This document shows, piece by piece, positions 756 through 48,129 of a stretch of 64,000 nucleotides of DNA (its first letter is position 1; the number at the start of each line of letters is the position of its first letter). Position numbers and translations under genes: made by a program. The stretch is from Podarcis tiliguerta. Lineage: Eukaryota. Below the pieces are notes generated by a model. It did no database searches, was not told where the DNA came from, and saw only the letters and a list, made by a program, of their open reading frames with translations. The DNA is taken from the NCBI GenBank assembly GCA_965153285.1, contig OZ229116.1. One strand, given 5' to 3'.

Positions 756-775
756 CTTAATATATTTAATATATA

Positions 776-1053
776 TTTTCTGCTGCTCCAGAGAAGCGGA
801 CACGGAGCAATGGATACAAACTACAAGAAAGAAGATTCCACCTAAACATTAGGAAGAACTTCCTGACAGTAAGAGCTGTTCGACAGTGGAATTTGCTGCC
901 AGGGAGTGTGGTGGAGTCTCCTTCTTTGGAGGTCTTTAAGCAGAGGCTTGACAACCATATGTCAGGAGTGCTCTGATGGTGTTTCCTGCTTGGCAGGGGG
1001 TTGGACTCGATGACCCTTGTGGTCTCTTCCAACTCTATGATTCTATGATTCTA
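776..1053 (+). mobile_element. CR1 LINE 3' end
   Basis: End of ORF2 followed by the CR1 3' UTR GGGTTGGACTCGATGACC...CCAACTCTATGATTCTATGATTCTA with octamer repeats. Confidence 0.9.
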
Positions 1054-1296
1054 TATACACAATTTGCATTCAATCTTCACTAATATAATTTTTATTGCAA
1101 AGCAGTCTCCCCTAATGAAGATTATTTGTATGTTATTTTTAGAAATCTGTGCAATGTTATGCACACTTTACCCGAGTATGTCATTCAGTGTCTGTACAAA
1201 GAGAGGTCATCAGGGACAGAGGTGGCATGATGCCAATATTTATTGCTTCCCCCAAAGCAATTTGAATAGAGAGATTATTATTTTCTGCTGTGTTAC

Positions 1297-4294
1297 CTGA
1301 ATGTAGTTCTTCACCAGTTCCCATTTCAGTTTAATGAGATAATCAATTATTTGATGGATCAGGAAACCCACTGTTCCTACTATTATTCCAATGATGCCCA
1401 TCACCAACCATCGATCCCAGTCCATTCTAAAAAATAAAAATAAAAGGGAATTGGTATCAGTTGCAGTAACCTCAGAATGTTAATAAGTAGCCTTTTGGTA
1501 ATGCATCTAAAATGCTAAACAGTTATTCAGGAATCGCAGTTTTTGAAAAGAAGAGCTGTTAGTTTCTTCTGGGTAGCTCTCAGAAGAATTGTGATTGAAA
1601 GGTGTTCATGTCTTTCCAGCCATGATTTTCTTTAACTAATGACTCAGAAGTGAAGGATTGAGACTTCTTTGTTCCACCCATATGCCTTGTTCTTTCTTCC
1701 CCAAAGCTTCTAGTCCATATCCCTAGGCAAGGATTGCCTACATCTCTAACTTGGCCCTTTGAATTGTCCCTGATCCAAATCTTAGGTTCTGCAAAGCAAA
1801 TTGCAACAAGAGCAAATTGACTTAATTTTCATAATTTAATCCAGACACAACAGTTGAGAATTACAAGCATAAACTTTCAAGATATCGTTTACTGGTAACA
1901 AATATGCTCCATTTAGCTCTTCTGATTATCCGCTACAGCTGCCTTAACAGCTAAAATAAGCAGGTGTGATGTCTCTTATGACTGCTCTGATGCAAGAATG
2001 TAACAATAGATCCAAGGATCCACTTCCCACTGGAAATTGGGTCTATTTAACATTTCCAAGAATCCCAGACCTAGTTATTCTCTGAAGAAACAGAGTCTGC
2101 AGCAAGAGCAAGAAACTCAGTCTGTAATCAATCCGTCCAATGTAGACTGCAACCTTTCCTGGTCACAGTGGACTTTCTTTCGTATAACAATTATAGATGT
2201 GCAACCTGTACTTTTGCAGCAATACTGTGTATTACCAAGTTTTATGTTTTTATAAACTGCTCCTAAGGAGACATGCTTAGGATGTTCCTGGTACCTTTTC
2301 CCTCCCTGCTGTATTTTGTGGCATTCAGATTGGTACAAATGAAGGTCTTGCCCTACTGTGGATTTGGAAATTGCTCTAACCTGGCAGCAGAGTTTCCTGT
2401 GTTTTGCATCTCTTCAGAATGTGGCAGTTCCTCATTGGTCCCTAACAGAGCATTTCCCCCCAAACATCTGAGTGCACTCTTCACTGTTCCCAATAGGTGG
2501 CACCAAAACACTTTGGTTTAAGCTTATCATTCAATGTAATAATACTTTACAGTCATATGCGCAAAGCGGAAATAATGGAAACTATGTTTGACTTGTGAAA
2601 GCTTTTGCTGGGGGGGGGTGGCGGAATCCTCCATGTACAAGTGGAGTGAGCCAAATGAAGACAGAACCATTTCATAGCCTGCAACTCGCTTCAATTATCT
2701 TTCTAGGAACAGGTAGAAAGCCCAGGTGTTCATGATGTGCTTTTAATACTTAAGCTACAAAATGATATTTTTCACCATGTCCATTTGAAATATATTTGAT
2801 CCATTATTTTGTCTCTGCTGGTCATCATGTTGGGGACTAAGAAAAATGCAGGTTTAAATTATCTGACTCTTACATAAATTATTGTACAAGCTGAGGAAAA
2901 TTAGGGCATGTTCCCCCCACCCATATTTTGGTACATCTGCATGCCATTGATTTGAAGAAGAGAGGTAAGCGTGTGGTCAGATTTTAAAAATGCTTTGCTT
3001 TGAGTGAACAGCACACTTAATTATAGAAAATCGGTGCAATGAAGAAGTTGGAAGAAGTTAAGCAACATGAAACCAAACCGACAAATTTTAGTTTGATTGG
3101 TTTGGATATCTTTGCCCAAAGAAACCTCAGCAGCTAAAGCTGATCACTACAAAGTTTGTTGCATCAAGCTTGAAGCTAATGAGAAATATTTATTCCAAAG
3201 CCATTTCTATTATGGAACTCCCTGCTGGTGTTCGATATCACTGACTCTCATAAGGTTTAAATCAAAGCAAGAACAAACATGTGTTTTGTCAGGAAATCCT
3301 AATGTAGACAACTGAGCATTAATTATATAACTCACTCTAAGACAGAAGCAGCTGACCCCATGCTAACTGGTATATAGCAGCAAAACCCAGACCCAAAGGT
3401 ATCATTTCTATATACCCACGGACTTTTTATTAAAGAAAAATAATCACAGGCTTCACACATGTACTGCCTTCCTGCTGCACTGTAACTCCGGTGGTATCAG
3501 TTGTGCCATTGGAACAGGTCTTTGGAGCAGACGTCCAGGGCTGAACAAAGGTAGCCCCATTTGTGGAAGGTCTCACCACATTTTAAAGCAAAACAGCTTA
3601 CCATTTAACACAAAATTATCTGCCTAACTACACTGGATGGCATGGCAGCAGAACACACCTCCAAGCCCTCTGTAAACTGAGTTCCTGTTATTTCCATTTG
3701 CTTCCCTTTCAACCTCCTGGGGAAAAAAGGGGGGTGAGGGGGTGCACAGGTGCTGGCACACATCCCTGAACTCCAATATTCCAACTCCTGCTGGATAAAA
3801 CAGGGGTCCCAGCATAGTGGGCATGCCCTCTTCATGCCTATTCCGCAAAGGCCTATTGAAGTAGGCAGATCCCTTATGCTGGAGTAAGGGAAAGTTGCAT
3901 AAATTGTAAGGTGCATCCCTGACTCCAAACTCCCTTACAACTCCCATTGCTTATTTTCCCTTTCATGTGAATTTCAAATGGGGTTCCAATTCGGTGTTAC
4001 TAATTCAGTGCTAATATCCAGTGTGTACAACAAGCAGGTTGTTTATTACCTGTAGTTTTGTCCCTGCAGCCACTTCTTGTAAACGCTGCTGTGGGAAGGC
4101 AAATAATCCAGACTTTCGTGGACAGATAGGCGTTCCCTTTCTTTCTCTTGGAGGAAGTTTGCCCTTCCTGAGCAGCTTCTGCTGCTGTTGCATCTGGGAT
4201 CAAGAGCCTCAATCAAATCTGGTCGATCTTCGGCTAGCAGCATCTCCTCTTCACCATCATCTGTGCATCTCTTGCAAGAAAATAGGGTTGCCAT
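1297..4294 (-). CDS. ClC-family chloride channel/H+-Cl- exchanger-like gene, ClC-6/7 branch; first two coding exons (4294-4050, 1426-1297), gene continues beyond window start
   Basis: Exon 4294-4050 encodes MATLFSC...RLSVHESLDYLPSHSSVYKKWLQGQNY and ends AG|GTAATA (phase 2). Exon 1426-1297 (TTAG|A ATG...CAG|GTAA) completes Arg and encodes MDWDRWLVMGIIGIIVGTVGFLIHQIIDYLIKLKWELVKNYIQ. ESLDY followed by W..M.IIG...G.V.F...LK is the N-terminal motif plus first membrane helix of ClC-6/7-type proteins. An in-frame TGA lies upstream of ATG 4294. Confidence 0.85.
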
Positions 4295-7200
4295 TTTGAA
4301 GAATCACAAGTGGCAGCAGAAGACCTCAGACCTCTGTCTGCAAATCAATGGTTGACAAATGCACCTGGAGAGGACTTACTGACTGCTGTGCAACAAGGGC
4401 TCACTGACTTATGTTGTGGGTTGGGTTGCTTCAGTAGCAGCACCACACAGATCCTGCGTGTTTGTGTCACCCAGAACCTGTCAGAACCAGATTTTTGTTT
4501 CATAGGTTACTTTCCCACCAGAAGGGTTGGGCAGGCAGCCAACTGAACACAGAGTCTTTCCTGAACAACAGAGAATGTGAAGTCTTAGGGTTTAAAATCA
4601 AGTGGCGATTGCAGAGGGTTTGGTCATCATACTTCCCAGCCAATTAATGTAAAAATTTATATCAGGCGCTAAGCATTCTGAACACATTGCAACAATGCTG
4701 TATCAGTTGAACTGGTAACTAGTGTGTTCCCAGGTCCATTTCAAAGCATGGGTCTTGAGCGTTAAAAGTCCTAAATGGCTTACGGCCAGGCTATCTGTAA
4801 CTGCTTATGTCCCAAGTTCAGCATCGAAGGCCCTGGTCAAGTAATCTGCCTTTAAGATTGATTAGACGGGCAGGCACTAGGACAGGGCTTTTTCAGGAGT
4901 GGCACCCCTACTCTGTTGAACTCCCAACAGAGGTATAGTTGACCCTTCTGCTTAGGATTTAAAATGGCTAAAAACTCCACTCCCAGATGCCTTTTATGTG
5001 CTTTTATTGGACTGTTTAAAAAAATGTATATGTTGGACCAACTGTATTTTAAAGCAAGGCTAGTCAATGGGGTATCCTCAATAGGTTTTTGAACTGCAAC
5101 TCCCATCGTCCTTATCATTAGCCTTACTGGCTGGGCTGATGGGTGCTGTAGTTAAACAACATCAGGAGGGAACCACATTGCTTAGCCTACGTTGCTGCTT
5201 AAACTGTTGTGTGTTTTTAAATTTCTAACATTTTTCATACATAATGCAATATTGTAATGTTATGTTTACATAATGGCTGGCCACAGTGGCAGACCTGGGG
5301 GTCTCAAATTTCAGTAGTGCCATGTGCAATGTCAAAATTCAAGCAACAAGCAAAGACAAAGGCTGCAAAAGGCACTAATAACAATGATTAGCACCAAGGC
5401 AGGCATTACAGAGCTGGCATCATCTGGCATCTAATGATACCCATAGCCTGGGCCCACTATCTGGAGTTTCCGGGCCTTGCTGTTGCCTGTTTACCTATTC
5501 CCCCTAAACAAGTGATTGAGTAAGTGAACAGAGCAAAAAGAAGGCATAGTGACAAATTCATGGTTTACAACGTTATAAGAAGGTGGTGTGTGCTCTCAGG
5601 TGGGGAGTGGCACAGGAAATTTTATCTAGAGGTTCCCCCAAATCAGTGTCTGAAGCAGGAAGGTGACAAAAGAAAACAGCCCGTCTCACTAACCTTGATG
5701 CTTCAAACCAATAAGGTCATTATTACTTTGGTTTAATTACAGGACATTATTGCTTCATTTTAAGAGACAGGGAACAATGCATGGATAGGTAGTGCTTCAT
5801 ATATACTTTTGGATATGGGTGGCATTCAAATGTATTCAGATTTTTAAATAATCATTTACTATTTATTATTATTATTATTATTTAGCGGGGGAATATAAAC
5901 TGCTTCCTAAAAAAGTCCAAGCAGTGTGCAGATTCTATTATATATAAAGCATGATTAAAATGAAGAAACCAATAAAAACAAACATGAAGAAAGCTATCAT
6001 TAAAAACAAAATGTAAACTAAAGCATGTGTCTGGATAGGCTTACTAGAACAGAAATGTTTTCAACAGCATCTAAAACAGTAAAGGCACCTGCCGAATGTC
6101 AAGAGGCAGGGAGTTCCACAGCACAGGTGCTGCCATGCTAATATAGTCTTGGGGCAGTAGAGAGGAGACTAACCATAGTCGGGGAAACACCTCTGAATCT
6201 ACTCAACAGATATCTTATCTATGTATTCTCGGAGGGCAGGAATACTGAATAACCCCCGCATCGTATTGCAGCTCTGTGTTTACTGTAAACTCAAAAACAG
6301 TAACAATACTGCATGTTTACATACAAGGCCTTAGATTCGAGTTCCACAGCTTTCCAGCAGCCTGGCTGTTTATAGAGTAGGAAAACAATAGAGGAATGAT
6401 GCAACGGTTCAGACTGAACAACACAACAGAGATCCACAGTCTTCGTGGCCATCTTGCAGTTACCTTTCAGGCAGCCTTTCAATTATGGGGGAAATGGAAG
6501 TGTGGCCTTTAACAGCCACTCCTAACCCCTTGACCTTTCTTAAGAGACAAAAGTTTTGTGATTTACACAAAACTTTCAGAATACCTGTGTGATGTTGTGC
6601 AAAACAGTTTTTCCTTTAGGCATGCTGCCGTGGGAATATGGGCTTCTCAGCTATGTTAGGAGGGAGGGTGAGAAAGAGACAGAAGCTCTATCTTCATATC
6701 TACTTCAGAATAAATATGGCAAACGATACTTAGGGACACAAACACTGAATCTTCCATCATAACCAGCACACGAATAAGTGTTTGACAGCTTTAGCTTTGA
6801 AATCATTTACCAATAAGTACTGGGGTTAATATTTAATACGATTAGCACACAATGAAGAGGTTGCAGAAACATGGAAGCTGGTAGTGGCACATTACCAAGA
6901 ATATCACTTCAACTGGAACTCCGCATAAGCCCTGGAACTAAGCATTTATTTTGGCTTTGTTCTGTGTAAAAGAGTGCAGTACTATTGCAAACAAACAGAG
7001 ACAGTGGTATAAGGTCAGTCCCGTGAGGGGAAGCTGTAGCGGCTTACGGTAATTCAAATCTCAAACAGCCTTTGCACAAGTCATAAAATTAATGGCAAAA
7101 AGGTTAATTATATATCCTGAACTTCTGTATCTAATGCAAACAGACACTCATATTTCTTACTAAGAACCTAGAAAGAGGCATCCTCCACCAGACATCTTCC

Positions 7201-8084
7201 CCTGTAACTGGATTAAGTCTCTAAATATGCATTTCCTCTGAAACATTTCTAATCACCTGGCTGTGACATGTGATTGACTTGTTGACAATTTGCTACTTGT
7301 ATCTTTTAAAAGTCCCTTCAGTCCTGCCCTGGTCTTTGAATTGGAGCTAATTTGTTTACTTTATTTACATATAAATAACTGGCATTATTTATTTAATGCC
7401 AGTTAGGAAGCTTAATTCCTATAATTAGGCGCCTCTCAGTTCCCACGTTGTTCAGTATCCTACCCAGGGCACTGATCTACATTTTGGGGATCCTCCAGAA
7501 GGCTTTTCTGCGCCACTCTTTTCCAAGCTTGCTCTCACTCCATAGATACTTGCAGAAGCAAGACTTCTTCAGCCTAGCTAGACCCCTTACACCCCTGCTG
7601 CCTCCCTGCTCCATTCCTTTGCCTCTCAGCAGTTAGTTTTCTCTTCAGGTCAGTCAGAACTGTTTCAAAGAGCACAAATTACCATTATTGCCCCCAAAAC
7701 CCGTTATAAAATTTTTGAACTTTTTTGGAGGGTCCCAAAGAACCCAGAGGATTTGTAGGATGACCTACAAATGCTACCTTATCTTCAACCACCTTATCAT
7801 AGCTTGAGCCTAGAAAACTGTATGCATCAGATATCAGGGAAGATTAGCCCTCCACTGCTTAGCCTTTGCCAGTAACTCTCAACCTAGTCATGACAGTGCA
7901 TGTATAAGTCACAGTGAAATTCAGACTTTTCTCCGCCCTTCATCCCACAGGATCTTGCTTCTTCTCTCTGCCTTTCTCATTTTCCTGATCTCTACATACA
8001 CAAAATTAGTTATTTCCATTTGTGCTTCTCCCCCTGGTGGCTTTAGACCTGCACTACATAGAGTCTGCCTCCTTAGTGCCCACC

Positions 8085-8388
8085 TGTACTTGATTCTTTT
8101 GAATTATAGTGCTGGAGAAGACTCTTGAGAGTCCCATGGACTGCAAGAAGATCAAACCTCTCCATTCTTAAGGATATCAGCCCTGAGTGCTCACTGGAAG
8201 GACAGATCCTGAAGCTGAGGCTCCAATACTTTGGCCTCCTCATGAGAAGACTCCCTGGGAAAGATTGAGGGCACAAGGAGAAGGGGATGACAGAGGACGA
8301 AATGGTTGGACAGTGTTCTCGAAGCTGGTGTGCTCTGGTCCATGGGGTCATGAAGAGTCGGACATGACTAAACGACTACACAACAACA
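8085..8388 (+). mobile_element. Bov-B (RTE) LINE 3' fragment
   Basis: TGCTGGAGAAGACTCTTGAGAGTCCCATGGACTGCAAG...GAAGCTGAGGCTCCAATACTTTGGCC...GAGTCGGACATGACTAAACGACT followed by a CAA-repeat tail. Confidence 0.85.
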
Positions 8389-9067
8389 TAATCCATGTAA
8401 GGAAAGCTCTTGTAGGAACACAAGAAGAGTCCAGCTGGATCTAGCCTATGGGTGCCTATGAAAATCCCAAAAGCAGGACTCAAGAGCAACCTATTTGAGT
8501 TTTCCTAATTTTCAGAATTGACTACTAGCTGCAATAGCATTTTGTGATAGGAACTGTTTCAGCTTATGGTCCAGGCCATGAGGTAGCCTGTGTAACTTAC
8601 AACCATCTTCTTTTTTCTTTACTAATGGTTCAAGCCACAGTAGATGTAGATCACCTCCAGTAAAGATCCCCCAACTGAACATGCCTGTAAGATGCAGGTT
8701 CACATGTGCATATGTATAGGCACAGGAGCAGGTAACAGGTGATACCAGAGGATGGGTCCCAGACCATTTTATTGCTTTGTTAAAAACACCAAATAAAAAA
8801 CTGTAAAGCAAATCTATAATATGTGAGACTGAGCAAGTTTCTCCCTGTTCCATAGTACTAGAAACTAAGGGCTGCCGAATGGCAATTATTGGCAGCAGCT
8901 TCTAGACAGACAAGAGGAAGTATTTCTTCACTCAACAAAATTAAATTGCATCAAGTTCGCCAACACATGGTTTGATGATGGCCATTAGCTTGGTGAGCTT
9001 CAAAACAGGATTACAGGCAGCAATTCATTGGCAGGAAGAACTGGGGTGCTCTCAAAAGGATGAGGTG

Positions 9068-9316
9068 CGATGACAGTGTAGTGGTTAAGAGCAATAGTCT
9101 CATAATCTGGGGAACTGGGTTCGCGTCTCCGCTCCTCCACATGCAGCTGCTGGGTGACCTTGGGCCAGTCACACTTCTTTGAAGTCTCTCAGCCCCACTC
9201 ACCTCACTGTTTGTTGTGGGGGAGGAAGGGAAAGGAGAATGTTAGTCGCTTTGAGACTCCTTAAAGAGAGTGAAAGGCGAGATATCAAATCCAAACTCTT
9301 CTTCTTCTTCTTCTTC
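9068..9316 (+). mobile_element. tRNA-derived Squam3-like SINE
   Basis: tRNA-like head GTGTAGTGGTTAAGAGC...GGGTTCGCGTCTCC, core GGGTGACCTTGGGCCAGTCAC, (TTC)n tail. Confidence 0.7.
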
Positions 9317-10466
9317 CAACAACACCCAAGTTGTTTCCATTGAAACTGCTAACATGGAAAGGTCTAGCTTGGTGCTACCAGAGCTGCGTTCCCCTCACCC
9401 ATGAGCTCACAATGATGGGAACATATCTTGCTCCAGCAAATGAATAATCAGTTCACTTTAAGCTTGATTATCCCTTTGCAGTAATGTCAGTTACACGAGG
9501 AGAGGAGACCTAGAGGGCAAAGTTTGCCCATGAGTCAAAGGTCTCCCACACCTATTCTAATGGCTCAAGCAAGGAAAAAGATTGCACTCACAATGCAGAC
9601 TGGTCAATACAGTAGCTGGTCAATACAGTGACCACAGCATGCCTAGCAAGTGTATATATGCAAGCTCCAGGTAACTTTTCATTCTAAAAGGGTCTTCTCT
9701 TGCAAATTATCCACACTGCAGCCTTCCACTGGTATGTTCTTTTTGCTGAAGAGAGGTCATCTGTGCACCTGTCCGTGCAACTGGATATATTTTTTAAATG
9801 ATTAATTTAGGGCAGCCAATCCAAGAACTGCAATCCTGCTCCTCTAAACCTCCCGAACCTTCTAGCAGCAATACCAAAGTACTTTAAGATAGCACTGAAA
9901 TGCTTACCAACAGTTTTCTTTTCTCCTATTCTCACAGGGTTGTATTTGATAGTTGAGTATAAGGCTTCAGTCATTGGAATAAGGAGAGAAGCAATTTTCA
10001 GTGATTTCCCCCTGAAGCTTCATGTGTTCCCCCTACATCTGATCTGGAGGGTCCCTAAACAAGCTCAAAATTGCTCCCCTAACCATTCAACTAACAGAAG
10101 TTGTAGTGTCAACCTAAGTGACACTGTGGAATATAACCCTTCGTTTTTAATAGCAAACCTGCTTTTAAAAAAAGCAATAAAGCATCGCAATAATATGAGA
10201 TACATGGGCATGAGCAGTTATGAAAGCAGTAAAGTTACAACTGGGTGTCCATTCTGTCGTCAATATTTTCTGTTTTGTCTTAAAAAGTATTACACATGTA
10301 GAATCTAACTTGTGCCTAGACTAATCACTTCAACAGCCTAAGATATAAAGTAAGTGAGTGGAACACTGCCACAGATTAGGAGCAACATCTGACCTCTTAG
10401 TGCTGCAAGGTACTACTGGCACAACTTAAACAGAAAGATAAGGACAGCCTCAAATACTTTCCACAT

Positions 10467-10567
10467 TTTATTTACATTTGAAGACTAATTTTATTCTCAA
10501 TCACATATCCATACACCTATTTTCCTTTTTTGTTTTGCTTCACTAAAACTTAAATGCATGGTTTATT
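10467..10567 (-). terminator. Candidate UBE2V2 polyadenylation signals
   Basis: Three minus-strand AATAAA (plus TTTATT at 10467, 10490, 10562) about 600-700 nt after the stop. Confidence 0.5.
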
Positions 10568-11182
10568 AGAACAAAGACTGTAAACAAATATTTGCAATGT
10601 CCATTACATGTAACACACAGGAGCCGCTTAAAAGAAAATCATTTCCCCATTTTATAAATACAAGTATCAAAACAATCCTGACCGTATTCTGTGACACTAC
10701 TAGCAGTCAGCACCCACACCTTTGCAAAAATTAAACAAGTTGAGCAATGGTATTTGCAGTACCTGCTACTGAAACAATTTTATCTGCAGCTCTTTTACTA
10801 AAGCAAGATGGATAAAGCATGCCATTTGTATTTTTTCTTCTTGAGAAAAAGTTTTCTGAAACATTATTCCACAGCAACCTGACACTTCCTGTCATGCTTT
10901 CGTCTTGAAACACCGGAGCTCCAATTTTAGGCTACTTCAGGTTTATGCTTAAAATTATAGTGCCTTGGTAAAGAGGAAAAATAATTGTGCTGCCTTTTTT
11001 TTTCTCTGATTGTGCCTGAAAACATATGGGGCATACATATACATATATATATTCTTTCAAATGTCCAGATCACGTACACCAGCAGAAACTCTTAATGTGT
11101 GGGTGGTTTGCATTGTGAGATTGAATCAAGACATTAAACATAAGTAGAAGTTGTTTAAGACAAGTTTGGGATTCAGCTAAAA

Positions 11183-25620
<14,438 letters not shown>

Positions 25621-27849
25621 CTTGTCCAAACCCCTCCCCCACCAGCCAGGAAACACACGGGCGCCGAGCACGTGACTTCTGCCTTGCGCCCTACGTCATT
25701 TCCTGGAAACTAGCCCCGCCCCGCGCTGGCGTTTGTTGCTTCTGCGCGTCGAGAGGGTGGCGGCTAAGGCGGCTGCAGTTAAGGGAAGGGAAAAGACCGA
25801 CCGACTGGGGTGGGTGGAGAGGGAGGGAAGGAGGGAGGCGGCTACGCGAAGCAATTGACAGGAGAAGGGAGCCCTCCCGGGCATTTGTCGCTCTAGTGTC
25901 GGGAAGTGAGGCTGCGAAAGGGTTAATTATGGAGTTTGCGGAGGTAGCCAATGGGGTGGCCTCCAGGTGGTGGAGGACTCCAACTCCCATCAGCCCCGGC
26001 CAGTATGGCCAATAGTCAGGGACGATGGAGCTGTAGTCGAATAAAACCTTCATCTACAGTGGCTGGCTTGGTGTATTAAATGTTGGGAAACTGATATGAA
26101 AGGCACACGCAGTGATAGTTGCTCACAGTACCAGTTACCACACAGAAGCAGCTTAAGATCCAAATACTTTACTATGGCAGAAGATAAGGCTCAGTAAAAC
26201 GGTTCTAGATTTAGAGTTATACAGCTTGTAGGCTTTTGCAGATGCAGATATATACAGATACATACAAGTAAAAAGTTTCTCTGTTGCTCCAAATACTGTA
26301 AACTCCAGCATTTCAGCATGTAACACTGGACTAGTAACACCAGTGGACTGATGACTCACAGACTGACTGAGCTGACATATATTAATCACATATATAGTTG
26401 GAGCAATAGGCCGTTACCATAGTAACTGGCTTGGCACATCTTGCACCTGCTATTAGTTCATCCATGGAGTGATTTATGCTTATGAAGGACATTACCCCTT
26501 TTCATTTCCAGTTGCTCCAACATTAAATACTACTGTATTTAATACAATACTATTGTGTTTTATGCAAGGGAATTTATTTCCTGCTCAAAACAGAAAGACA
26601 AGGCTATAGGTTGAATTCATACCATAACTCAAGCCCTGCATGTTACCCTCCTTCCTGACTGTAGAGAACAAATGTGGAATCTATGGCTCTTCAAATGTTG
26701 CTGGACATTTATAATTTATTTATAATTGAAGGTTTTTATAATTTACATTTTGTATTGTATATTATGTTTTTAATTGTAAACTGCTAAAGGAACTCAGTTA
26801 TATGGATGGAAGAGAAATGTAATTAAAAAATTGTTGTCTGAGGGTGCTTAGTCCAGTGCTGTTATTAGAGCCTGAAACAGTTTTTATCAGCTTCAGTTGA
26901 TACACTAGCTGCAACCGTAGCTGGATGGACCATGCTCTGGTGCGCACACACATTTAGATTACTGCAATGCATTATACATGGAGCTTTATTTAAAAACAGT
27001 CAGTAGATCTAAAATAGTTGATGCAAAATAGGACTACAATATTGTTTTACTGTGACTGGATGTTTTGATCATATTAAACCTGTCAGTGCTTAGCCAGCTG
27101 AACTGGCTCTCATTTCGTTTCTGGCCCAATTTAATGAGCTGATTTTAACCTATTAATTCCTAATAGTTTAGGACCAGGATACTTGAAAGATTATTTTGCT
27201 CTCATATATACATGTTTGAACATTAAGATCCTCACCAGAGGCTCTGTTTGATGTGCACCGGAAATCTCTTCTGGGAGTTCCTCCAAGCCACTTGAGCAGA
27301 TCTGGGGGAGGGGGCACACAGGAAGAGGAGAGAAGGAAATTCCATTATGCAGGTGGAAGTTTTTGCACAAATGGAACAACTTTGTTGCATACAGCCCTAT
27401 GTGCTGGAAAACTGGTCCTTGATACGAGAAGTAAAAGTATCAATCTTGATCCATAAGAAAACATGTATACCAGGACAATGCTTTTATTAGACGAATGAAA
27501 ATATCACAAAACAGTGTGCAAGCTTTGAAAGTTCTCCAGAACTACTACTCCCACATTCCATTTTAAGATTGTAATCAGATGCAGACTCCATGGCTTCGCC
27601 ATCATCCATTTTTTCCCTCCCTTTCTTTCACAACCGTTTGTTTTCTGACATTTTGGATAGCCAGATAAAGGATTTGCCCTAATAAGGACTTTGGAATTCT
27701 CCTTGATACAAGGTACTTAAACATAAGTTTTGACCTGTTTCTAACATTTCTTCTTGAGCAAGATTGCTGAACATGTGTTGGAGATCAGTTGCAGGCATTC
27801 TTGGAATCTGACCACCCACGGTTCAAATATAGGACACTAAACATAAAAA

Positions 27850-35194: not shown

Positions 35195-47294
<12,100 letters not shown>

Positions 47295-48129
47295 AGCTCA
47301 GCGCAATCCTCCTAAGGGCAGGAAGGGCGGCGGGACAAGGAGGCAGCAAAGCCCTGAGAGCGGCTGCTGGCAAACAGCGCGCGCAAGACGATGGCGACGG
47401 CGGCAGCTTCTCTGCGCGCGAGACACAACAGAGGGCAGAGAAGGAAGGAAATTCCGCGCCAAAAGGATCACGTGACCTCGAGTGTTCGCGGGCTTTCGCC
47501 GCCAATGGGAAGTGGGAAACTCCAACTCTGCACGGGGGGGGGTGAGCAAGTGCCGCTCCTTGTACGTTTTCGGCCGAGAGCTTGAACTGAGAGGTGCGGG
47601 TTATGATGGAGAAGGAGGGAAAACTTGTCAAACTGACGTAGCTGACGAAAACTACAAGAGGCTTTCCAAACGCTTTTTTTCTTCAACGTCGAGGCCCCGT
47701 TCTAGAATGGTATCGCTTGACAGGCTTCCTCGGCCATTCGGACGGGGATCTATGGCGAGAGGGGCGGGGGTTAACTCTGCGTTCCCCGGATTGGTGCTTG
47801 CGGGGCAAGCGGCACAACGCTGTTTAAAGGCCGGGAACGCCCTCTCCCCCCCCCCCGGTATCCTGGAGGCAATGATGGTTTCGCCCAACATTTGGCGGCC
47901 TCGTTCCTCTCCCCCCCCCCGCACCTCCTGCAGCCAATCGCGTCGCCTTTCCTGCCCTACGAAAGAACTGGTTCCTGCCACGGAAGTTTCCTCTCTTTCC
48001 ACCCCCTTCCCGTCGGAGGTGTTGGTTCTGCCCGCTCTCCTCCCTAGTCCCGGGTGAGGGAGACCCGGCGGCGTCCTAGCGGCGCCTTCGTCCTGCTGAC
48101 CGAGGCGGCTGAGCGGGCGCGCGGGCACC
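47295..48129. promoter_or_regulatory. CpG-island bidirectional promoter region of MCM4/PRKDC
   Basis: 835 bp between divergent ATGs; CpG-rich (about 47150-48430); E2F-type site TTCCGCGCCAAAA 47452-47464, E-box TCACGTGA 47468-47475, CCAAT 47502-47506, GC boxes. Confidence 0.85.

Follow-up and report, generated by a model that had tools for sequence, protein, structure and literature searches.

A lizard CLC gene of the CLC-6/7/plant branch that appears to be neither CLCN6 nor CLCN7

We analysed a stretch of 64,000 nucleotides from the lizard Podarcis tiliguerta (GenBank assembly GCA_965153285.1, contig OZ229116.1), hereafter called the window. Close to its left end, on the minus strand, are two coding exons of a CLC gene (Table 1). 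An earlier note on this DNA had described an intact-looking gene of the CLC-6/7 branch. Exon 1 is opened by an ATG at position 4294 (A at -3, G at +4), the first to follow an earlier in-frame stop. The exon has 245 nucleotides, equivalent to 81 codons plus two nucleotides, and ends at the donor ACAG/gtaata. Exon 2 is preceded by a long pyrimidine tract and the acceptor ttttag/A, with the ag at 1428-1427. It has 130 nucleotides, one nucleotide plus 43 codons, and ends at the donor TCAG/gtaaca. The codon split between the exons, AG/A, encodes arginine. Hence, the two-exon model of the earlier note, with canonical splice sites and matching phases, was correct on rereading the sequence. The peptide quoted there is also identical, letter for letter, to the window translations. 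These include EEEMLL and ESLDYLPSHSSVYKKWLQGQNY from exon 1, and MDWDRWLVMG...LKW from exon 2.

Table 1. Features of the window, all on the minus strand; X1 and X2 are sequencing runs of a close relative.
Feature	Position	Strand	Remarks
Coding exon 1	4050..4294	-	cytosolic N-terminus: EEEMLL (residues 15-20), DRPDLI (23-28), ESLDYLPSHSSVYKKWLQGQNY; covered by a relative's probable-RNA contig
5' untranslated region of exon 1, minimum extent	4295..4414	-	contigs of X1 and X2 reach 4372 and 4414; at least 120 nucleotides
Intron 1	1427..4049	-	2623 nucleotides, GT..AG; joint 1426<->4050 carried by a contig of X1 and by one of X2
Coding exon 2	1297..1426	-	DWDRW and first membrane helix (CLC helix B); corresponds by alignment to helix B of chicken and human CLC-7
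Possible alternative first coding exon (tentative)	6325..6452	-	42 codons plus 2 nucleotides, exon 1 phase; ATG start, donor GTATGT
UBE2V2 coding exon	13470..13598	-	PDB: UBE2V2 85 bits vs UBE2V1 78
UBE2V2 coding exon	18724..18864	-	second exon identified
MCM-like open reading frame	37087..37434	-	within the MCM4 stretch 37087-38722
MCM4 exon	38300..38722	-	257 bits vs 145 for MCM7

The window holds 124 of the roughly 827 codons of the gene. In tblastn searches only ortholog residues 1-126 map there; the other 700 or so codons lie past the left end. Consistent with this, tblastn of two full orthologs against the window found no further exons below 1297. The description "intact-looking" therefore applies to these two exons alone.

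Two gene models of other lacertids begin differently. The first 43 residues of a Podarcis lilfordi model (P0243) map to the possible alternative first exon with 93% identity (tblastn), and the model continues into exon 2. This stretch may mark an alternative promoter or first exon, or it may result from an annotation error. The Lacerta agilis isoform X2 model (P0245, 744 residues) begins at MDWDRW. Its start is the exon 2 methionine (window 1423-1425, minus strand). A tail-less isoform that starts in exon 2, and so lacks both of the dileucine motifs described below, is conceivable.

Evidence for splicing was sought in contigs from sequencing runs of related species, placed on window positions 1100 to 4600. 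Runs X1 and X2 both derive from organism A, a close relative, and contain about 5% of the stretch's words; that they are RNA is a guess. Their contigs cover only the two exons. One contig in each run joins 1426 to 4050, skipping 2623 bases, and the ends of the skipped piece read CT..AC on the plus strand, which is GT..AG on the gene strand. The first record of X1, of 3209 nucleotides, lies on 4372-4050 and 1426-1297 before continuing for 2753 nucleotides outside the window. The first 30 of these loose letters, when reverse-complemented, encode KGNFHMTWLY. In the Podarcis muralis protein (P0152), the same residues come next after ...NYIQ. The genomic contigs of two other relatives (X6 and X8) span the whole stretch, intron retained. 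The earlier note had staked the gene on spliced reads joining 4050 to 1426; the contigs of the close relative, probable RNA, carry exactly that joint.

To establish what the exons encode, exon 1 and exon 2 were queried apart in every search and never joined. Among 1.84 billion representative proteins, the 43 residues of exon 2 gave 97 matches at E<=0.001, six of them at E<=1e-10. The long matches are CLC proteins that carry the same N-terminal signature. The aligned stretches of the 97, read as a group, show the same helix and, where covered, the upstream motif too. Named matches, "chloride channel protein A/B/C-like" and similar, come from Varanus, Phrynosoma, two birds, a frog, skates, amphioxus, abalones and a sea spider. 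We conclude that the exon matches go beyond chance.

Closer relatives identify the gene. Orthologs from Podarcis align by tblastn to 4294-4049 (E of 3e-43 and 5e-46) and to 1431-1297 (E of 4e-22). For exon 1, alignment gives 94% identity to P. muralis P0152; the tblastn values are 93% for P0152 and 96% for the Podarcis raffonei protein (P0244), from which the exon differs at three residues. The exon 2 peptide is identical in seven lacertid models. By these identities the window would be placed in a lacertid, most likely a Podarcis. In RefSeq, the models of Podarcis, Lacerta and Zootoca are named "chloride channel protein C-like", have about 827 residues, and contain CLC and CBS domains. The lacertid cluster has full-length models from five species: P. 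muralis, P. lilfordi, P. raffonei, Lacerta agilis and Zootoca vivipara. A galliform cluster contains Gallus gallus XP_015138137.3, and there are models in Xenopus tropicalis, X. laevis and Anolis carolinensis. Compared with the "chloride channel protein C-like" entries of P. muralis (XP_028592848.2), G. gallus (XP_015138137.3) and X. tropicalis (XP_002934155.3), the window exons are orthologous, with no substantive difference. The RefSeq names are automatic and shift for this one gene among A-, B-, C- and D-like, "6-like" and "7-like". The window very probably contains the 5' end, two coding exons, of the lacertid ortholog of the RefSeq "chloride channel protein C-like" gene.

We next consider the family to which this gene belongs. 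A search with the skate member (P0098, 824 residues) among 8000 scored candidates returned 252 proteins at E<=1e-10, of which the best 120 are listed (769-1887 bits). All 120 contain PF00654 and 113 also contain PF00571. Vertebrates among the best 120 are sharks and rays, the bichir Polypterus, caecilians, salamanders, frogs, turtles, Alligator, many birds and many squamates. The invertebrates among them are hemichordates, amphioxus, echinoderms, molluscs, a brachiopod, a nemertean, corals, a spider and the sponge Oscarella. Neither insects nor nematodes occur among these best 120 of the 252 matches, and no mammal or teleost occurs in their 114 named rows. A normally conserved mammalian ortholog would score like those of other tetrapods (at least 1000 bits) and hence would appear among the best 120. 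Within the family, the bit scores of the skate protein fall from 1086 for Podarcis to 787 for a sponge. The Podarcis protein has 59-62% identity with elasmobranch members and 52% with the bichir; for 21 invertebrate members, the sponge included, the range is 43-49%. The earlier note had the gene kept in reptiles and outside the mammalian set. Its view of mammals agrees with the 114 named rows, but "reptiles" was too narrow, given the members from sharks and rays, bichir, amphibians, birds and many invertebrates.

A tree of the family by itself was built from 58 members using IQ-TREE (LG+C20, short search) and rooted on the sponge. Vertebrates form one clade, with support of 100, on a stem of 0.89 changes per column. 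The branching matches the species tree. Elasmobranchs stand apart, and the tetrapods include frogs, salamanders and caecilians. Within sauropsids, turtles with Alligator and birds are separated from squamates. The gecko branches first among the squamates, and Podarcis groups with Rhineura. By sequence identity, the window exons group with lacertid lizards. The pattern of the tree is that of an old single-copy gene, apparently passed on by vertical inheritance with losses.

Polypterus senegalus (P0199) is the sole ray-finned fish among the best 120 matches, and its branch is very long (0.99). Its N-terminus has no dileucine motif, and EGLDFV stands in place of ESLDYL. Relaxed or altered constraint is possible in this lineage.

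Family members were then compared with CLC proteins of solved structure in the PDB. P. muralis P0152 scored 343 bits with human CLC-7, 341.5 with chicken CLC-7, 317 with CLC-6 and 308 with AtCLC-a. The remaining scores were 180 for CLC-3, 139 for CLC-2, 114 for CLC-1 and 106 for CLC-K. A profile of 56 family members gave the same order: 520 and 511 bits for human and chicken CLC-7, 509 for CLC-6 and 440 for AtCLC-a, then 264, 220, 201 and 155 for CLC-3, CLC-2, CLC-1 and CLC-K. For the chicken member (P0253), the scores were 340 bits with CLC-6, 332 and 325 with human and chicken CLC-7, 292 with AtCLC-a, 180 with CLC-3, 132 with CLC-2 and 113 with CLC-1; CLC-K fell under the cut-off (E>1e-30). 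In a model of P0152 predicted by AlphaFold, the best-matching folds were AtCLC-a, CLC-7 and CLC-6, with target TM-scores of 0.82-0.90 and identities of 27-28%, 30-31% and 28-29%, respectively. The orthologs also have the Voltage_CLC domain and CBS pair of the CLC family, identified as PF00654 and PF00571 and by the fold matches. By these scores, the family lies within the CLC-6/7/plant branch, about equidistant from the known members of that branch; its similarity to the sponge and coral proteins that belong to the family is far greater.

The same comparisons separate the gene from both named relatives. Identity to human and chicken CLC-7 is 30-31%, and chicken has the family member XP_015138137.3 beside its own CLC-7 (7jm6). 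The family member is no closer to chicken CLC-7 than to human CLC-7 or CLC-6. Human CLC-6 is 28-29% identical and scores no higher overall than CLC-7. Hence, the gene is distinct from CLCN7 and, judged by similarity, from CLCN6. This agrees with the earlier note, whose phrase "neither CLCN6 nor CLCN7" is supported by bit scores, identities and the chicken paralogy; the CLCN6 part is a matter of similarity.

A signature further marks the family. The pattern ESLDYLP.HS..Y..W, followed by DWDRW and helix B, is present in the window and family-wide. Its columns are nearly invariant over 127 members, with Y in 119, P in 118, H in 117 and the final W in 124. The earlier note had picked out ESLDYLP..S..Y..W and DWDRW as the mark of a subfamily, and the motifs, ESLDYLPSHS..Y..W and DWDRW, do recur throughout. 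It had also given ESLDYD and a longer linker before the first helix for mammalian CLCN6/CLCN7. CLC-7 indeed has ESLDYD, with a linker longer by four residues.

With CLC-7, the 2Cl-/H+ exchanger of lysosomes, the family shares its fold (target TM-score 0.85-0.90), its domain order, ESLDY before helix B and dileucine-type motifs in the N-terminal tail. The central serine, gating glutamate, proton glutamate and central tyrosine are also shared. In contrast, the family has the shorter linker with the motif LPSHS..Y..W...DWDRW, a luminal loop of about 46 residues (P0152 408-453) rather than about 18, and the filter sequence GPEGP where aligned CLC-7 has GKEGP. CLC-6, an exchanger of late endosomes, scores at about the level of CLC-7, is the top match of the chicken member and aligns unbroken over the luminal loop; its difference is the low identity given above, for which human CLC-6 was the only one compared. 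AtCLC-a, the vacuolar nitrate/proton exchanger of Arabidopsis and thus an intracellular exchanger, is the best Foldseek match (E of 1.5e-37) and aligns over its full length in one stretch. Its central site has proline, a residue tied to nitrate preference, whereas the family has serine in 117 of 127 members.

The transport sites fall beyond the window. Their residues were taken from the orthologs, as counts over the 127 members of at least 700 residues, with P0152 numbering. The roles of these residues are known from work on ClC-ec1, CLC-5 and CLC-7. Besides the central serine (S162), the gating glutamate E205 is present in 126 members and the proton glutamate E272 in 125. The central tyrosine Y603 is found in 91 and replaced by phenylalanine in 35. 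Counted in the alignment, these positions correspond to S204, E247, E314 and Y602 of human CLC-7. A different placement of the tyrosine, at the motif NDVQS, would have meant its loss from the family. We rejected this placement; the CLC-7 alignment puts the residue at the LY that opens the next helix, where it is kept. The orthologs therefore have both central residues of CLC anion binding and the pair of glutamates found in CLC exchangers. Inspection of the two glutamates had been proposed in the earlier note.

Other positions beside the filter are peculiar to the family or to its vertebrate members. Proline precedes the gating glutamate (GPEGP) in 118 of 127 members, where aligned CLC-7 has lysine. 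In vertebrate members the residue before the central serine has changed: proline occupies this position in 81 of the 127 and glycine in 37, the inspected invertebrates among the latter. Within P0152 156-206, a few residues upstream of the central serine, cysteine occurs in 87 members versus arginine in 36. Phe-Cys (89 and 86 members) is found before GPEGP versus Pro-Val (38 and 37). The vertebrate filter-side changes coincide with the long vertebrate stem branch. In the luminal loop of the family, two cysteines are invariant and an N-x-S/T sequon is conserved, which suggests a glycosylated luminal face.

The cytosolic tail encoded in the window contains two motifs, EEEMLL and DRPDLI, that fit the acidic dileucine pattern [DE]xxxL[LI]. 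Of 36 vertebrate members, 21 have a motif of the EEEMLL type at this position: all five elasmobranchs, four of eight amphibians, all three turtles, Alligator and eight of 11 squamates. The second, DRPDLI-type motif is kept in 16 of the 36. The earlier note had read EEEMLL as a fit to an endolysosomal sorting signal; it matches the pattern, but with none of the seven birds or 18 invertebrates keeping it, the motif is a candidate signal.

We propose a simple outline for the protein. It would be a full CLC, with a membrane domain and two CBS domains, and would work as a dimer. The kept central serine, gating glutamate, proton glutamate and central tyrosine would support voltage-dependent 2Cl-/H+ exchange. 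The two acidic dileucine motifs of exon 1 would sort it to endosomal or lysosomal membranes, with the conserved loop, its two cysteines and its N-glycosylation sequon facing the lumen. A coupled 2Cl-/H+ exchanger is likelier than a channel because both glutamates are present. We narrowly favour an exchanger with an endolysosomal location, both being predictions from sequence.

A real protein with another function is the alternative to be set against this outline: an uncoupled anion channel, a transporter with another anion preference, or a protein of the plasma membrane. The vertebrate filter-side changes (proline in 81 of 127 members against glycine in 37 before the central serine), the long stem and the proline before the gating glutamate (lysine in CLC-7) would suit such a change, as would the lack of a strict dileucine motif in birds and most frogs. 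Conversely, all four residues of coupled exchange are kept. CLC-6 and CLC-7 are described as intracellular exchangers in the available text of PMC11339754. So far as that text goes for these two, the nearest relatives of known function, AtCLC-a being the third, are all intracellular exchangers. We regard another function as unlikely, though it deserves to be kept in mind beside the exchanger. A further alternative is that the gene is not one of its own. Lizard CLCN7 or CLCN6 with a divergent N-terminus would explain why, among solved structures, exon 2 and the full ortholog match CLC-7 and CLC-6 best, and it would explain the labels "chloride transport protein 6-like" and "H(+)/Cl(-) exchange transporter 7-like" that some sources give to members. 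However, over 39 aligned positions of helix B, there are 3 differences between the chicken and human CLC-7 sequences, whereas the window peptide departs from the two of them at over half of these positions. For this reason the window peptide is unlike a sauropsid CLC-7. The full ortholog, moreover, is nearer to invertebrate family members (43-49%) than to CLC-7 (30-31%) or CLC-6 (28-29%), chicken has both the family gene and CLC-7, and CLC-7, CLC-6 and the plant CLC score nearly alike. Identity with CLCN7 is close to refuted, and that the gene is either of the two is barely credible.

One may also suppose that this species has a silent or decaying copy of the gene, and that two clean exons are its remnant. 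That 124 of some 827 codons are readable here, that no RNA of this species was found, and that five non-synonymous to six synonymous changes in exon 1 is not a strongly conservative ratio would fit such a history. Against this, the exons are open, their splice sites are canonical and the exon 2 protein is unchanged. Full-length models occur in five lacertid species, a congener provides the 3.2-kb spliced contig, and squamates keep the gene on short branches. We consider decay very unlikely. The reading that is left, probably correct, is that of a real, spliced lizard gene in its own CLC subfamily within the deep CLC-6/7/plant branch. The subfamily runs from sponges to birds, and no mammal or teleost was found among the 114 named rows.

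Several observations weigh against this reading. Exon 1 matches no CLC among the solved structures of the PDB. For exon 2, the hits to helix B of chicken CLC-7 (E of 0.17), human CLC-7 (0.25) and CLC-6 (0.6) are not significant taken singly. Neither window exon has a Pfam match, because the exons end at helix B. None of the runs recorded as RNA contains the gene's stretch, and no RNA run of the lizard's own species was found. The spliced contigs come from another species, under an RNA label that was guessed: over 4050-4372, X1 differs from the window by 11 substitutions and three gapped letters. Six of the substitutions are synonymous and five non-synonymous; the changed residues match P. muralis, and the protein of exon 2 is the same. 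Constraint on the tail encoded by exon 1 is thus modest. With two exons visible, stops or frameshifts may lie further down in this genome. The separation from CLCN6 is drawn from similarity scores against human CLC-6. The AlphaFold model is of moderate quality, with a mean predicted local distance difference test score (pLDDT) of 71.9 and a predicted template modelling score (pTM) of 0.72. Lastly, the strict dileucine at residues 15-16 is missing in seven of seven birds, three of four frogs and the bichir, and 0 of 18 invertebrates have such a motif anywhere in the N-terminus; transport mode and location are predictions.

The neighbourhood agrees with the position assigned in the earlier note, downstream of UBE2V2. 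Two UBE2V2 exons lie upstream of the CLC gene on the same strand. The last UBE2V2 coding exon, expected between the third coding exon and the CLC gene, was not found in the readable sequence of 4400-13400, which includes a run of N. MCM4 lies further upstream (Table 1). Stretches rich in G+C at about 24000-26000 (0.50) and 46000-48000 (0.52) are presumably promoter regions, for UBE2V2 and for MCM4 with its divergent neighbour. Open reading frames at about 766-1040 (minus strand) and 21357-21728 (plus strand) share LTVRKFFL and probably lie in copies of one interspersed repeat. Separately, contigs of the relatives pile up at about 1125-1180, to depths of several hundred.

The earlier note called the gene essentially uncharacterised. 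We found no published description of the subfamily, or of the RefSeq names, in full-text literature (supplementary files and subscription journals were outside the scope), but the gene has already been annotated automatically as "chloride channel protein C-like". What is gained is recognition and characterisation, not an unknown sequence. Mammals have nine ClC members in three groups, as the available text of the Concise Guide to Pharmacology has it (PMC11339754). We think it reasonably probable that the family is a fourth animal CLC subfamily, beside CLC-1/2/K, CLC-3/4/5 and CLC-6/7. It would be as old as sponges, a single gene and vertically inherited; our searches found it in no mammal or teleost. 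Given the filter-side changes on the long stem, the vertebrate form may depart from CLC-6 and CLC-7 in coupling or in anion selectivity.

Work on intracellular Cl-/H+ exchange has been built on CLC-3 to CLC-7. If the reading is true, birds, reptiles, amphibians and cartilaginous fishes have a further CLC, a new candidate player in vesicular ion homeostasis in chicken, Xenopus and Anolis. Its lack in mammals and teleosts would explain why a tenth vertebrate CLC went unstudied, although these three species carry the gene. The family would be a natural comparison for the dependence of CLC-7 on Ostm1, for the effect of filter-side residues on transport, and for what mammals replaced or gave up when the gene was lost. 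Its interest would be chiefly for CLC transporter research and for mammalian gene loss.

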